Assembly (NCBI GenBank): GCA_000388065.2
Contig: KB932207.1
Length of the DNA: 16,103 nucleotides
Direction: 5' to 3' (one strand)
Origin: Fonticula alba ATCC 38817
Taxonomy: Eukaryota > Protista > Nucleariida
Shown here: piece after piece, positions 10,745 to 15,457 of the stretch
Layout: every line of letters begins with the position of its first letter
Position numbering within the stretch: position 1 is the first letter of the stretch
Made by a program: the position numbers and the translations under genes
Notes under the pieces: generated by a model
Databases searched by the model: none
What the model saw: the letters and a program-made list of their open reading frames with translations, nothing else
What the model was told of the DNA's origin: nothing

Positions 10745-13700
10745 TTAAGCGAGACTCAGGTCGGCCAAACCCGGCAGCGGGGACTCCGCGGCGCCGGCGG
10801 CGCCGCTGGCCGTCGGCAGGCTGGAGGGCGAGCGAACCGGCGTGGCCGGGGCCTCACCCGGGCTCAGGGCGTCCTCGGCCTCGGACGTCAGCGACGTGGC
10901 CGAAGCCGGGGCCAGCATCATGTCCTCGCTGAAGGGGCTGCTGCCGGTGGGGCCGGCATGCTTCCTCGGGATGCCGGCGTCGGTCGGCTGCTCGCCACCG
11001 GTGGCGGACATGGCCGGGGTGGTGGTGGTGGTGGTGCTGGCGCTGACGGCGGTGTGGACCACCGGCACCGGCACCGGGGCCGGGGCCACCGCCGCCCCGG
11101 CCGGAGGCACTTCCCCGACACCGGGCTCCGCGCCGGCCGGCGGGAGTGGCGCCCGCCCAGGCAACGGCAGCGCCGGGGCCACCCCCGAGCCTGGAGTCCC
11201 ACCAACGGTGGACACATGTGAAAGGGAGGACGGGATGCCCGGGGGGTTTTGCGACAGGCGGTTTGGCCGGTGCGGGGTCAGCCCCGGCGGCGGGCGGATC
11301 CCCGGCAGCAGGGGGTTCATGCCGAGGTCCGAGCCGGGGACACCGGCCGGGCCGCCGCCGCCACCGCCGCCGGCGCCGCCACCCGGCGTCGGCAGGCGCT
11401 GGATGCGCATGGCCGGCCGCGGGGTGGTCCCCGGGGCGATGCTCATCGGCGGGGCGATTTCCGACTCGGCCGCATCGTCCAGGTACCCGGTGAAGCGGCT
11501 CTTGGAGGAGTGCGGCGTGGCGCGGCTGGTGGACAGGCTACGCGACACCGGGGTCGTGGCCACGGTGACCGAGGCGGTGGGCGGGATGCCCGAAGGGTCC
11601 TCCGGCCCGCCGGAGGCGAAGAAGTCCGTCCCGTGGCCGGCGGCCGGGCCGAACTGCTTGCGCCCGGAGTCATCGGTGCCGCCCGGCGTCGAGGGGCAAT
11701 CGGTGGAGTTACGCCGGAAGAGGCTGCTCGAGGTGGACCCGGAGCGCGTGGGCCGGGGGCTGGCCGGGGCGGTGCCCACCGGCGGCGGCCCAGCCAGGAG
11801 CCCATTCACCCGCATGTGGGCCTGCTGGCCGTGGAAGAGTCGCAGCGGGGACCCCTGCACCGTGGAGGGGAGCACCGTGAAGCAGGTGGTGTTGAAGCGA
11901 CCGCGACTGCGCAGGAGGCGGTTGCGCGGCTGCAGGGCGGCGGCCAGGGGGGGAAAGCGGGTGCAATTAGTCCATGTGGCCATACAGGGAGTGGTGGTGT
12001 GGGGGGGGGGGTGGGGGAGGGGGTGAAGCACGGGGAAGCGCAGGACGCAGGGACAGCAGGCGCGAGGAGGTGGGGGCGGGGGAGAGAGAGAGAGAGAGAG
12101 AGAGAGGGCAGGAGAGACCACGCACCTTGGACGCATAGTCGAACAGCGGGCTGAAGATGTTGTGCAGCATCAGCCCATAGGTGCCGGTCATGTCCAGGTC
12201 GAAGGAGCAGAAGGACTGCCCGATGGCCGACTGGCAGGAGAGCATCTTACGCGACAGGCTCGACCCGAAGGTGTTGATGTCGTAGGCCGGCTGGCCGGCG
12301 TAGTCCGGCAGCGAGGCCGCCCCCTTGGCCGAGGTGCGCTTGGCCTCGGAGAAGGTGGGCATGCAGTGCACCCGAATCATGGTCAGGTCGTCGCCGGCCA
12401 GGGCATGCTCGATGCGCGAGCGGATCCCATAGGACACCGTGTCGCGCTGGGCATCGATGACCACCACCGCCAGCGAGAAGTACTCCTTCAGGAGGTCCTC
12501 CTTGAAGCAGGTGTCCAGGTCCGAGTCGGCCGAGAGGATGACCATGGCCGAGAGGGACTACGCCCGGCAGGAGCAGGATGGTGAAGGGGAGGGAGGGACG
12601 GGGGAGAGAGAGAGAGAGAGAGGGGGGGAGGGGGGGAGCAAAAGAGACAAGACGGCGCCGGAGGCACAGCCGCGTGTCAGTATTCCGGGAGGAGCACGCG
12701 TCGGGCGAGCGGGGCACACAGATGCACACGGAGGAGGCGCTCCCACATGACAACATACCTGCGAGCGGGTGTCCAGAAGGAAGTTGTCCACCTCGGACAG
12801 ACGATGCACATGGTACCGGGCCACCCGGTCGTCACACAGGCGGCTGTGGGTGGTGGCCGTGCGGCTGGCATACGGGTGCATGGCGCGCAGGAGCCGCACG
12901 AAAATGTCCACCTCGTGCGCCTCGCCGACCATCTGCAGGACGAAGGTGTCCTCGGCGCCGGAGCTCCGGACCCCGGTCGACCGGGAAGACCCGCCCGAGG
13001 AGAACATCGTCATGACCGTGGCCACCGAGGAGATGGACGCCTGCGAGGACACCGAGGAGATGGAGTTCGACCGGCGCAGGCTGGTCATCCCGCCGCCAGA
13101 CAGGGGGGCCATGTGCGGCGGCAGGGCCGCCGCACCGCCGGTACTGGCGAAGGTGCTGTTGATGCTGGTGATGCTGGCCGTGTCGCTGCCACCACCACCA
13201 CCACCACCGCCGTACATGTCCTCCCCGCCGCCCGGGGACATGGGCACCCCGCCGAAGGTGTTCAAGCTGTCGGTGGACCCGGCCACCAGGGAGGCGCTGC
13301 TGGCCGAGGCGCTCACCACGGCCGGGCTGTCCAGGAGCTCCTGGCCCACCATGGCCCCGAGGAAGGACCCGGCCGAGTTGGGGCTGAAGTTGGCCACCAC
13401 CAGGTCCACCGGGCCGCCGGGGGTCGACTGCAGCAAGTCGAAGCTGAAATCCTTCAAGTCACACAGGCGCTCCATGCGGAAGGACGACTGGGCAATGACC
13501 GACCGCTGGAAGGCCATCATCACGGCGTCCGAAAAGAGGAACAACATGCCCCGGCACTTGGTGTGGGTGTTGTCCGAGGGGTCCAGCACATTGACCGCCA
13601 CCTTGCCCAGCAGCAGGCGCGTGGAGGAAATCAAGGTCGGCGGGCAGTCCAGCACCCGGCGCTGGATGTTGATGGTCTCGGTCATGGCCTTGGTTTCGAA

Positions 13701-15457
13701 GGTGGACGTGTCAATCATGCGCCCGGCCCGGAGGACCTGCACATAGATGGCCAGCAGCTGGCGGAAGTCCACCGAGTCCAGGTCCCAATGCTGCAGGATG
13801 TTGGACACCAGCATGTCGTAGCGAGTCAGCCGCTGGACCGGCTCCATGAGCAGGTCCTTCAGCTGGAGCCGGTCCTCGGTGGAGGCCAGCCCGCCGAGGA
13901 AGTCCGCCAGCTGGGGCGAACTCTCGGTGCGCTTGGTCAGCCGCTCGAGCGAGGTGACAATGCTGCTGATGTAGGGCTTGTACTCTTCCAGCCGGTGGGC
14001 CAGCCAGGACAAGCAGGACAGGACGGTCGGGGCGGCCGGGCCGGAGGCCGGGTCGGCGACCGGCTGCACCGGCGACCGAGCCACCTCCTCCGGGCTGAAG
14101 AGCATTTGCAGGATCTCCCGGGCGCCATGCTCCTCGAAGAAGGCCCGCGTGGCCACCTCGAAGGTTTGCAAGAACCGCCGGTTCAGCTGCACCACCCGGT
14201 GCAGGCCGGAAAAGATGAACTGCACGTCGTGGGTGGAAATCAAATCCGGATGGCCCCGGGCAAAGGTCTCCAACCGGGGCAGCGAATGCTCAATGGCATA
14301 GGTCACGCGCCGGAGGAAGGACCGCTCGCTGCTCAGGAGCTCGGCCACATTCTGGCAAACGACCTGGATATTTTGCCGGCCCAGCTTCAGCTCCAGGGCC
14401 TTGAGGGCCTCGGCCGGCTGGAGGTGCGCCAGGCGCTGGAGGTCCTCCTCGTCCGGGAGCTTCTTCTTCTGGCTGCCGGCGTGGTCTTGCAGGAGGTTCT
14501 TCTTGCTGACCAGGGCCGCCGGGGAAAGTTGCAGCTCCGGATTCAGCAGGGTCATGTAGTGCCCGGTGACGGACGGCGAGTCGGCATCCAGGAACACGTC
14601 GAAGGAAGACACCCCCCGGTGGAGGTACTCCCGGTCGAGGCGCGAGAAGAGGGCGCACAGCCGGCCGAGGGGCACGCGCACCGCGCGGAAGTTGCTGTCC
14701 GCACGCCGGGCCAGCGGCTCCTGCCACACGGCCCCCAGGCGGTGGTGGCGGATGAACTCGCTGAGCATGGTGTTGATGAGGGCCTCGTAGTTGCTGATGC
14801 GGAACTTGCTGCCGGAGGATTTGCTCTTCTCGGCCTTGTACAGGTCCGCTCGGATGGGCAGCACCGACCGGCCGCCGGCCGTGCGGATGATGGCGCACAT
14901 GTCCGCCGGCTCCAGGGTGCACGTTTCCCGCGGCAGGGTCAGACAGAGGAGCCCCAATTCCGCGTCCTTCAGGAAGTAGTGCTGGTGGTTCTTGCAGAAG
15001 CCCACATTGTGGCAGGGGGGAACATAGTCGGTGGTGCTGGCCGCGCGCGGCAGGGTGGCCGGCTTGCCGGGGAGGTGGTCATGGACGAAGCCGAGCTTGG
15101 CAAGGCGGGACTGTGTGCGGGGGGCGGGGGCGGGGGCGGGGGCGGGGGCGGGGGCGGGGGGACGGCACAGGAGCAGGGCCAGCAGACAGTCAGGAAGCGA
15201 GGAAGAGGGGGTGGTTGGGGCAAAAGAGCATGCGAGGGAGAGAGAGAGAGAGAGAGAGAGAGAGAGAGAGAGAGAGGGAGAGAGAGAGAGAGAGAGAGAG
15301 AGAGAGAGAGAGAGAAGGAGAGAGAGAGAGAGAGAGAGAGAGAGGGAGAGGAGGGAGAGGGCGCATGGGCAGGGGTGGGACACGCGGCGATGTGACGTAC
15401 GTTGATATCGGCGAGCGCAGATGCGCTCGTTGGCCCGGACAGGTCGGACATCGACAT
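10745..15457 (-). CDS. Dbl-family RhoGEF (DH-PH) flanked by two halves of a RapGAP-like domain, with a long Pro/Ser/Thr/Gly-rich tail, ~1341 aa, 4 exons
   Basis: Exons 15457-15401, 15110-12759, 12557-12126, 11929-10745; all introns phase 0; 4026 nt. DH hallmarks ELLSSERSFL (CR1) and LKDLLMEPVQRLTRYDML (CR3) at about 14360-13704. PH with MLFLFSDAVMM from about 13646. An extra 5' exon is possible. Confidence refers to the RhoGEF call; the RapGAP halves are less certain. Confidence 0.9.
12082..12106. repeat. (GA)n microsatellite in RhoGEF intron 3
   Basis: About 12 GA units. Confidence 0.92.
12604..12622. repeat. (GA)n microsatellite in RhoGEF intron 2
   Basis: About 9 GA units. Confidence 0.88.
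15120..15160. repeat. (GGGGGC)n hexamer repeat at the 3' end of RhoGEF intron 1
   Basis: About 6 tandem gggggc units; reads (GCCCCC)n on the transcript just before the CAG acceptor. Confidence 0.9.
15238..15350. repeat. Long interrupted (GA)n microsatellite in RhoGEF intron 1
   Basis: About 110 nt of GA units with a few interruptions. Confidence 0.95.

Follow-up and report, generated by a model that had tools for sequence, protein, structure and literature searches.

The guanine nucleotide exchange factors (GEFs) Bud3 and S. pombe Gef2 regulate bud-site selection, septation and cytokinesis; no fold has been assigned to the parts of these proteins that lie outside the DH-PH core. For Gef2, no structure or motif is known beyond DH-PH (PMC3806657), and a study of the domains of Bud3 mentions no part resembling a GTPase-activating protein (GAP) (PMC9175976). 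Here, we describe a gene of the nucleariid protist Fonticula alba ATCC 38817, carried on the minus strand of a 16,103-nucleotide stretch of contig KB932207.1 (assembly GCA_000388065.2; hereafter the window), which encodes a RhoGEF likely to belong to the same family. An earlier note, made from the window's sequence, had proposed that this protein is a DH-PH RhoGEF inserted into the middle of a RapGAP-like domain, a layout not known to have been described; full-text literature searches combining Bud3 or Gef2 with RapGAP terms returned nothing relevant. The parts of the protein, with the evidence on which each is delimited, are as follows.

14433..15110, minus strand: N-flank, residues 20-245 (family hidden Markov model (HMM), hhalign, and tblastn to the metagenome contig L001)
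14802..15008, minus strand: RapGAP dimerisation-domain-like block, residues 54-122, KNHQHY...LG...IIRT...LPI (family profile matching Rap1GAP; PF21022 in relatives)
14523..14696, minus strand: second conserved N block, residues 158-215 (conserved in the family; putative counterpart of the strand and helix that open the RapGAP catalytic fold)
13653..14432, minus strand: DH domain, residues 246-505 (Pfam RhoGEF PF00621, AlphaFold2 (AF2) helical bundle, PDB sequence matches)
12873..13652, minus strand: PH domain, residues 506-765 (AF2 strands), including a Gly/Ser-rich disordered insert at residues 600-738 (12954..13370)
12759..12872, minus strand: first part of the C-flank, residues 766-803, end of exon 2 (alignment with the two strands and the helix that open the C-flank in the family)
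12126..12557, minus strand: second part of the C-flank, exon 3, residues 804-947, RapGAP catalytic-domain-like (fungal-only HMM; fold from relative P0033 only)

The motif strings quoted by the earlier note are all found on the minus strand where it placed them. Its N side (15002-14484) corresponds to residues 56-228 and its C side (12851-12126) to residues 773-947, the latter correctly bridging a 201-nt intron (12758-12558) that RNA evidence shows to be genuine. The Rap1GAP strings that it quoted for the N side agree with the sequence of PDB entry 1SRQ in HMMER alignments. The ~540 residues between the two halves are, as proposed, a DH and a PH domain. The DH domain matches Pfam RhoGEF PF00621 with E=9e-22 (78.5 bits, against a gathering cut-off of 27.6) and is modelled by AF2 as a helical bundle, with a predicted local distance difference test score (pLDDT) above 90 over residues 240-590; its matches among PDB sequences include ECT2, Trio, Vav and intersectin. 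The core residues P443, V444, Q445 and Y450, which occupy columns invariant across the family alignments (conserved region (CR) 3, PVQR..RY), are all present, as is E281, the CR1 glutamate, where the family reads T-E..Y. In the PH domain, six strands are modelled at residues 519-593 (pLDDT ~80-95), and, judging from the alignment, the final strand and helix would lie after the disordered insert of ~140 residues. The F. alba protein itself gives no match to Pfam PH, nor to the ECT2_PH and PH_BUD3_C profiles; the match to the ECT2 chain (6l30) extends into the PH domain. When 1.84 billion representative sequences were searched exhaustively with HMMER, the protein itself was returned and otherwise DH-PH matches only, at 77 bits or less. 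Word-indexed homologue searches gave a single fungal DH protein for a piece of the open reading frame, nothing for the N-flank and, for the relative P0012 introduced below, P0012 itself only.

Relatives and the RapGAP likeness of the flanks

The flanks were followed into other proteins by re-searching 150 DH matches locally with the HMMER filters off and by gathering a family through iterative HMM searches. The first seeds were weak matches, of the N-flank to P0012 (residues 57-124) and of the C-flank to P0003 (residues 373-438), directly after its PH domain. For the N-flank, round 1 and trimmed alignments alone were used, as rounds 2-3 drifted into the start of the DH domain; round 1 recovered the N-flank in Zoopagomycota, an aphelid and F. 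alba (E 1e-9 to 1e-14). The C-flank was recovered in Mucoromycota, Zoopagomycota, the aphelid, P0003 and Pneumocystis. The zoopagomycotan members come from Mycoemilia, Dispira, Coemansia, Tieghemiomyces, Dimargaris, Linderina, Syncephalis, Thamnocephalis and Neoconidiobolus, those of Mucoromycota from Absidia, Benjaminiella, Choanephora, Gongronella, Pilobolus and Calcarisporiella, and the aphelid is Amoeboaphelidium. The Pneumocystis protein matches both flank HMMs more weakly and carries the Pfam domains PH_BUD3_C and Nod1, which identify it as a Gef2/Bud3-type GEF. All these relatives are annotated as hypothetical or as ‘DH domain-containing’ proteins only; among 23 of them, Pfam recognizes ECT2_PH in 16 and PH_BUD3_C in nine. 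Five Mucoromycota proteins (P0032, P0033, P0034, P0047 and P0103) are without the dimerisation-like N block and keep the short second block before the DH domain. The layout of N-flank, DH-PH and C-flank is present in fungal, aphelid and metagenomic relatives and is not peculiar to F. alba, being the layout of the Bud3/Gef2 family.

The nearest relative found, P0003, lies on L001, a bioreactor metagenome contig (ENA ERZ922528, 4321-6473) of eukaryotic origin with a GC content of 0.59. A prokaryotic gene caller has split the gene there, so that P0003 comprises the DH-PH and part of the C-flank. A tblastn search of L001 with the F. alba protein yields three collinear matches, to the N-flank (linked E=8e-8), the DH-PH (E=2e-22) and the C-flank (E=0.022), and the motifs shared by the two N-flanks include LC-A...LDREY. 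These matches show that both flanks are conserved elements.

Membership of F. alba in the family was tested with HMMs built without it. The N segment scores 8.7 bits (P=7e-5) and the C segment 8.4 bits (P=1e-4), values equalled in 0/2000 shuffles each. When F. alba and P0003 were both left out of a fungal-only C-flank HMM, F. alba reached 7.0 bits (P=2.8e-4, 3/3000 shuffles) and P0003 7.5 bits (1/3000), in a common register. Comparison of the N half with the family by hhalign gave P=1.3e-4. In addition, the flanks occupy the same positions around the DH-PH, and it is these same relatives that match the F. alba DH-PH best. The F. alba protein likely belongs to the family, more firmly by its N half than by its C half.

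The N-terminal likeness to RapGAPs is one of sequence. A profile of the trimmed N block, searched against 177,635 PDB sequences, finds exactly two matches, both of them Rap1GAP (1srq and 3brw; E=0.0065; chain positions 14-72). The Pfam dimerisation domain Rap-GAP_dimer (PF21022) matches the N blocks of 6/13 family members, with a best E of 1.2e-4 and E=4e-4 for P0012, and no other Pfam family recurs; all these matches fall below the gathering score of 27 bits, and F. alba itself gives none. Conservation of the second N block extends to every member of the family, even to the Mucoromycota without the first block. In the profile of the whole N-flank, an extra stretch aligns at Rap1GAP chain positions 139-163 (an FL..LG helix), collinear with the first match and individually insignificant. 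This second block may correspond to the strand and helix with which the RapGAP catalytic fold begins.

The C-terminal likeness is one of structure. Residues 352-500 of the Benjaminiella protein P0033, modelled by AF2 with a 20-sequence family alignment (pLDDT 78.6; predicted template modelling score (pTM) 0.72), fold in the order strand-strand-helix-strand-helix-strand-strand-helix-helix. VIA comparison of this model with 48,161 PDB representatives places Rap1GAP at rank 1, TSC2 at ranks 3 and 4 and RalGAP at rank 16. Foldseek against the PDB gave no significant E-value, with Rap1GAP (3brw) at the top by both probability and template modelling (TM) score. In the Swiss-Prot part of the AlphaFold database, the first match is S. 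pombe Gef2, residues 595-725 (probability 0.99, TM 0.56); GARNL3, Ashbya Bud3 and a PH/Rap-GAP protein of Dictyostelium come next, and all others have TM<=0.25. Among AlphaFold database clusters, family members are followed by SIPA1L2, GARNL3, Rap1GAP2 and several ‘Rap-GAP domain’ entries, and a structure search of the ESM Atlas returned G-domain-like clusters only, with TM below 0.5. The F. alba protein would share this C-flank fold.

A further AlphaFold database cluster, S2JG72 (rank 4, E=2e-5), is a Mucoromycota ‘C2 NT-type domain’ protein in which the C-flank fold stands at the N-terminus and no DH domain is present, suggesting that stand-alone paralogues of the module exist.

The catalytic asparagine of Rap1GAP (the ‘Asn thumb’, N290) is, by alignment, part of a G-N-D just before the third strand. 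In an alignment placed by eye, F. alba reads S-L-S-A at this point and appears to lack the asparagine. The Mucoromycota read K-N-D or N-N, and the residue is S, C or M in Zoopagomycota, the aphelid, P0003 and Pneumocystis. In this alignment, Asn-Asp at the RapGAP catalytic position is kept in the Mucoromycota relatives only.

One interrupted module or two domains

The Rap1GAP ranges matched by the two flanks are collinear: residues ~87-149 and 213-237 are matched before the DH-PH, presuming that the 1SRQ chain begins at Rap1GAP residue 75, and residues 240-404 after the PH domain. On this evidence, we favor, with moderate confidence, the reading that the F. alba gene encodes a Dbl-type Rho GEF, a divergent Bud3/Gef2 member, in which the DH-PH is embedded in a RapGAP-derived module. 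That module is most likely a pseudo-GAP, since it is apparently without the catalytic asparagine. A dimerisation-like block and the short second block would precede the DH domain, and a RapGAP-catalytic-like domain would follow the PH domain, with the DH-PH entering near Rap1GAP residue 238, some ~50 residues into the catalytic domain. Domain insertion would be the simplest reading of this arrangement; the strand and helix that the C domain is missing would then come from the second N block, and the two halves may pack together. Because the DH domain retains the residues invariant across the family alignment, we propose an active RhoGEF within a pseudo-enzyme shell; this shell could serve as a scaffold for dimerisation, for autoinhibition or other regulation, or for small-GTPase binding, and would position or gate the DH-PH.

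Several results weigh against this reading. The flanks of F. alba give no Pfam match at E<=10 and, by phmmer against all PDB sequences, none at E<=10; in an AF2 model of residues 1-947 computed with a DH-PH-only alignment, the flanks have a pLDDT of ~30 and no confident structure. Pfam Rap_GAP (PF02145) is matched neither in the F. alba flanks (E<=10), nor in 23 relatives (E<=1), nor in 20 C-flanks, and neither of the C-flank profiles (A4 and A10) nor P0003 by itself finds a RapGAP among PDB sequences. The second N block, searched alone, gives no RapGAP match. By hhalign, the C half of F. alba is not significantly similar to the family (P=0.04 and 0.15), and the structural match was obtained with a Mucoromycota relative whose C-flank shares ~10% identity with that of F. 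alba. A scan of the whole F. alba protein with HMMER, which sums split matches, also gave no Rap_GAP match.

Pairwise comparison is little more informative. The top local alignment between the N-flank and the Rap1GAP segment of 1SRQ is the very pairing that the earlier note listed first, and its score of 37 is equalled in 112/5000 shuffles (p ~0.02); the second N-flank block is not significant in the same comparison. F. alba against Rap1GAP alone is marginal; significance arises only through the relatives, and on the F. alba protein alone the case for a split RapGAP would be unproven. The proposal of the earlier note accordingly holds at the level of the family, through N-block sequence, C-flank structure and collinear ranges, but not in the direct tests of F. 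alba, which gave no RapGAP match. The link of F. alba to RapGAPs is transitive, with P ~1e-4 for each flank, and the C half is the less secure of the two. Primase-like and dynamin-like leads for both flanks, which came from ESM Atlas feature searches, were dismissed as noise for their low shared-feature counts.

The alternative that survives best, though we regard it as rather unlikely, is that the DH-PH lies between two separate RapGAP-derived domains, one dimerisation-like and the other catalytic-like, the latter having lost its first strand and helix and the second N block being a linker or a DH-associated element, so that no fold is interrupted. It draws on the silence of the second block when searched alone, on the confident folding by AF2 of the C-flank without that block, and on the Mucor-type paralogue (S2JG72) with the fold at its N-terminus and no DH domain. 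However, the second block is retained upstream of the DH domain even in those Mucoromycota that lost the dimer-like block, and its sole weak alignment across the PDB falls at the collinear Rap1GAP chain positions, just before the start of the C-flank match. An arrangement in tandem also leaves unexplained the ~50 N-terminal residues of the GAP domain that the structural matches to TSC2 and Rap1GAP do not cover.

More doubtful is an extension of the interrupted-module reading, in which a split, degenerate RapGAP module would be ancestral in Bud3/Gef2 GEFs across Holomycota and would sense a Rap-type GTPase (yeast Rsr1/Bud1) or Rheb, binding of which would shift the two halves and thereby open or close the DH-PH. 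If true, it would provide a direct physical link from a Rap-like landmark GTPase to Rho/Cdc42 activation.

Less probable still is that the flanks have no RapGAP ancestry and are lineage-specific, the C-flank showing a common G-domain-like alpha/beta arrangement and the N block resembling Rap1GAP by chance. The failure of Pfam Rap_GAP in F. alba flanks and relatives, the sub-threshold scores of PF21022 and the pairwise p of only ~0.02 speak for it; the family-level likenesses described above are set against these. A bifunctional enzyme, combining active GAP function towards Rap, Rheb or Ral with Rho GEF function in a single polypeptide, is very improbable, for the K-N-D of Mucoromycota that recalls the Rap1GAP G-N-D is replaced in F. 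alba and the remaining relatives, and no RapGAP sequence profile matches.

Gene model and expression

The interrupted-module reading concerns a gene that is spliced and transcribed. It comprises four exons encoding a product of 1341 residues, in a window with a GC content of 66-75% that is eukaryotic. Transcripts of ~4.1 kb from four RNA runs align as the collinear pieces 15565-15401, 15110-12759, 12557-12126 and 11929-10751. The start codon at 15457 is the first ATG of the transcript, and the introns have GT..AG ends. The remaining features of the gene are as follows.

15401..15565, minus strand: exon 1, 5' untranslated region and first 19 codons, ATG at 15457-15455 (RNA contigs unbroken and joined to 15110)
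15111..15400, minus strand: intron 1, GT..AG, containing (CT)n microsatellites (absent from all four RNA contigs)
12558..12758, minus strand: intron 2, 201 nt, GT..AG (joint 12557|12759 in all four RNA runs)
11930..12125, minus strand: intron 3 (absent from RNA contigs)
10745..11929, minus strand: exon 4, Pro/Gly/Ser-rich tail, residues 948-1341, and stop codon (RNA contigs)

Codon-position GC is the same in all segments, flanks and DH-PH alike (third-position GC 0.91-0.96), and the flanks are therefore ordinary coding sequence. The tail encoded by exon 4 has a second-position GC of 0.70, typical of low-complexity sequence; a Pfam search of residues 948-1341 found no family at E<=10 and no Nod1-like region.

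In the databases, the 1341-residue product appears unchanged as residues 868-2208 of a longer protein, P0002 (2208 residues), the first 866 residues of which are nicastrin. We rejected the annotated 2208-residue model as the true product and treat it as a chimera of nicastrin and the RhoGEF, because the RNA contigs, which begin near 15565, run unbroken through the annotated acceptor at ~15459 and the annotated bridging exon has zero RNA depth over 15748-15938. P0002 also has a near-identical internal repeat, at residues 131-178 and 654-700.

Within the tail exon, in the poly-Gly/GGN part at 11088-11359 of the window, RNA contigs contain ‘joints’ that omit 257-270 nt and the word depth spikes. 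These joints have non-canonical ends and just 21-22 nt on one side, and are probably assembler artefacts rather than introns. Other tracts of the window (5467-5678, 10380-10430, 15999-16060 and 15238-15343) comprise two assembly gaps, written as runs of N, a homopolymer of 62 C bases that lies upstream of the RhoGEF gene, and long microsatellites, (GA)n/(CT)n, by which intron 1 is filled.

Comparison with known systems

ECT2/Pebble, the RhoGEF of animal cytokinesis, is among the closest solved DH-PH sequences (6l30, E=8e-6 over DH and PH), and the ECT2-type PH profile matches the relatives of the F. alba protein. ECT2 differs in carrying BRCT repeats at its N-terminus and in lacking any RapGAP-like part.

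Likeness to the RapGAP family (Rap1GAP, SIPA1/SIPA1L, TSC2, RalGAP and GARNL3) lies in the flanks. The N block resembles the Rap1GAP dimerisation domain, the C-flank fold resembles Rap1GAP 240-404, the TSC2 GAP domain, RalGAP and the models of GARNL3, SIPA1L2 and Rap1GAP2, and the order of the segments is collinear. In contrast to these proteins, the F. alba module is broken by ~540 residues of DH-PH, Pfam Rap_GAP is unmatched, and the catalytic asparagine is apparently absent in F. alba and most relatives.

The closest described systems are the RhoGEFs Bud3 and S. pombe Gef2. Like the family assembled here, they have a DH domain, next to it a PH domain of the ECT2/BUD3 type, and then a post-PH domain, to which the P0033 model is matched in Gef2 (595-725) and Ashbya Bud3, and the Gef2-like protein of Pneumocystis matches both flank HMMs. 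The F. alba protein differs in having no Nod1-like region, a disordered tail, a PH insert of ~140 residues and very divergent flanks. The F. alba gene is probably a divergent new member of a known GEF family, for whose layout the RapGAP-like module, apparently split, is a new description. A RapGAP-derived module would give the regions of Bud3 and Gef2 outside DH-PH a structural identity and would supply a hypothesis for GEF regulation, through dimerisation or through a bound GTPase of the Rap/Rsr1-like or Rheb-like kind. One GTPase-regulator domain inserted in another would be a rare arrangement, and its occurrence in Fonticula as well as in an aphelid and early-diverging fungi would place the origin of the layout before the fungal radiation.

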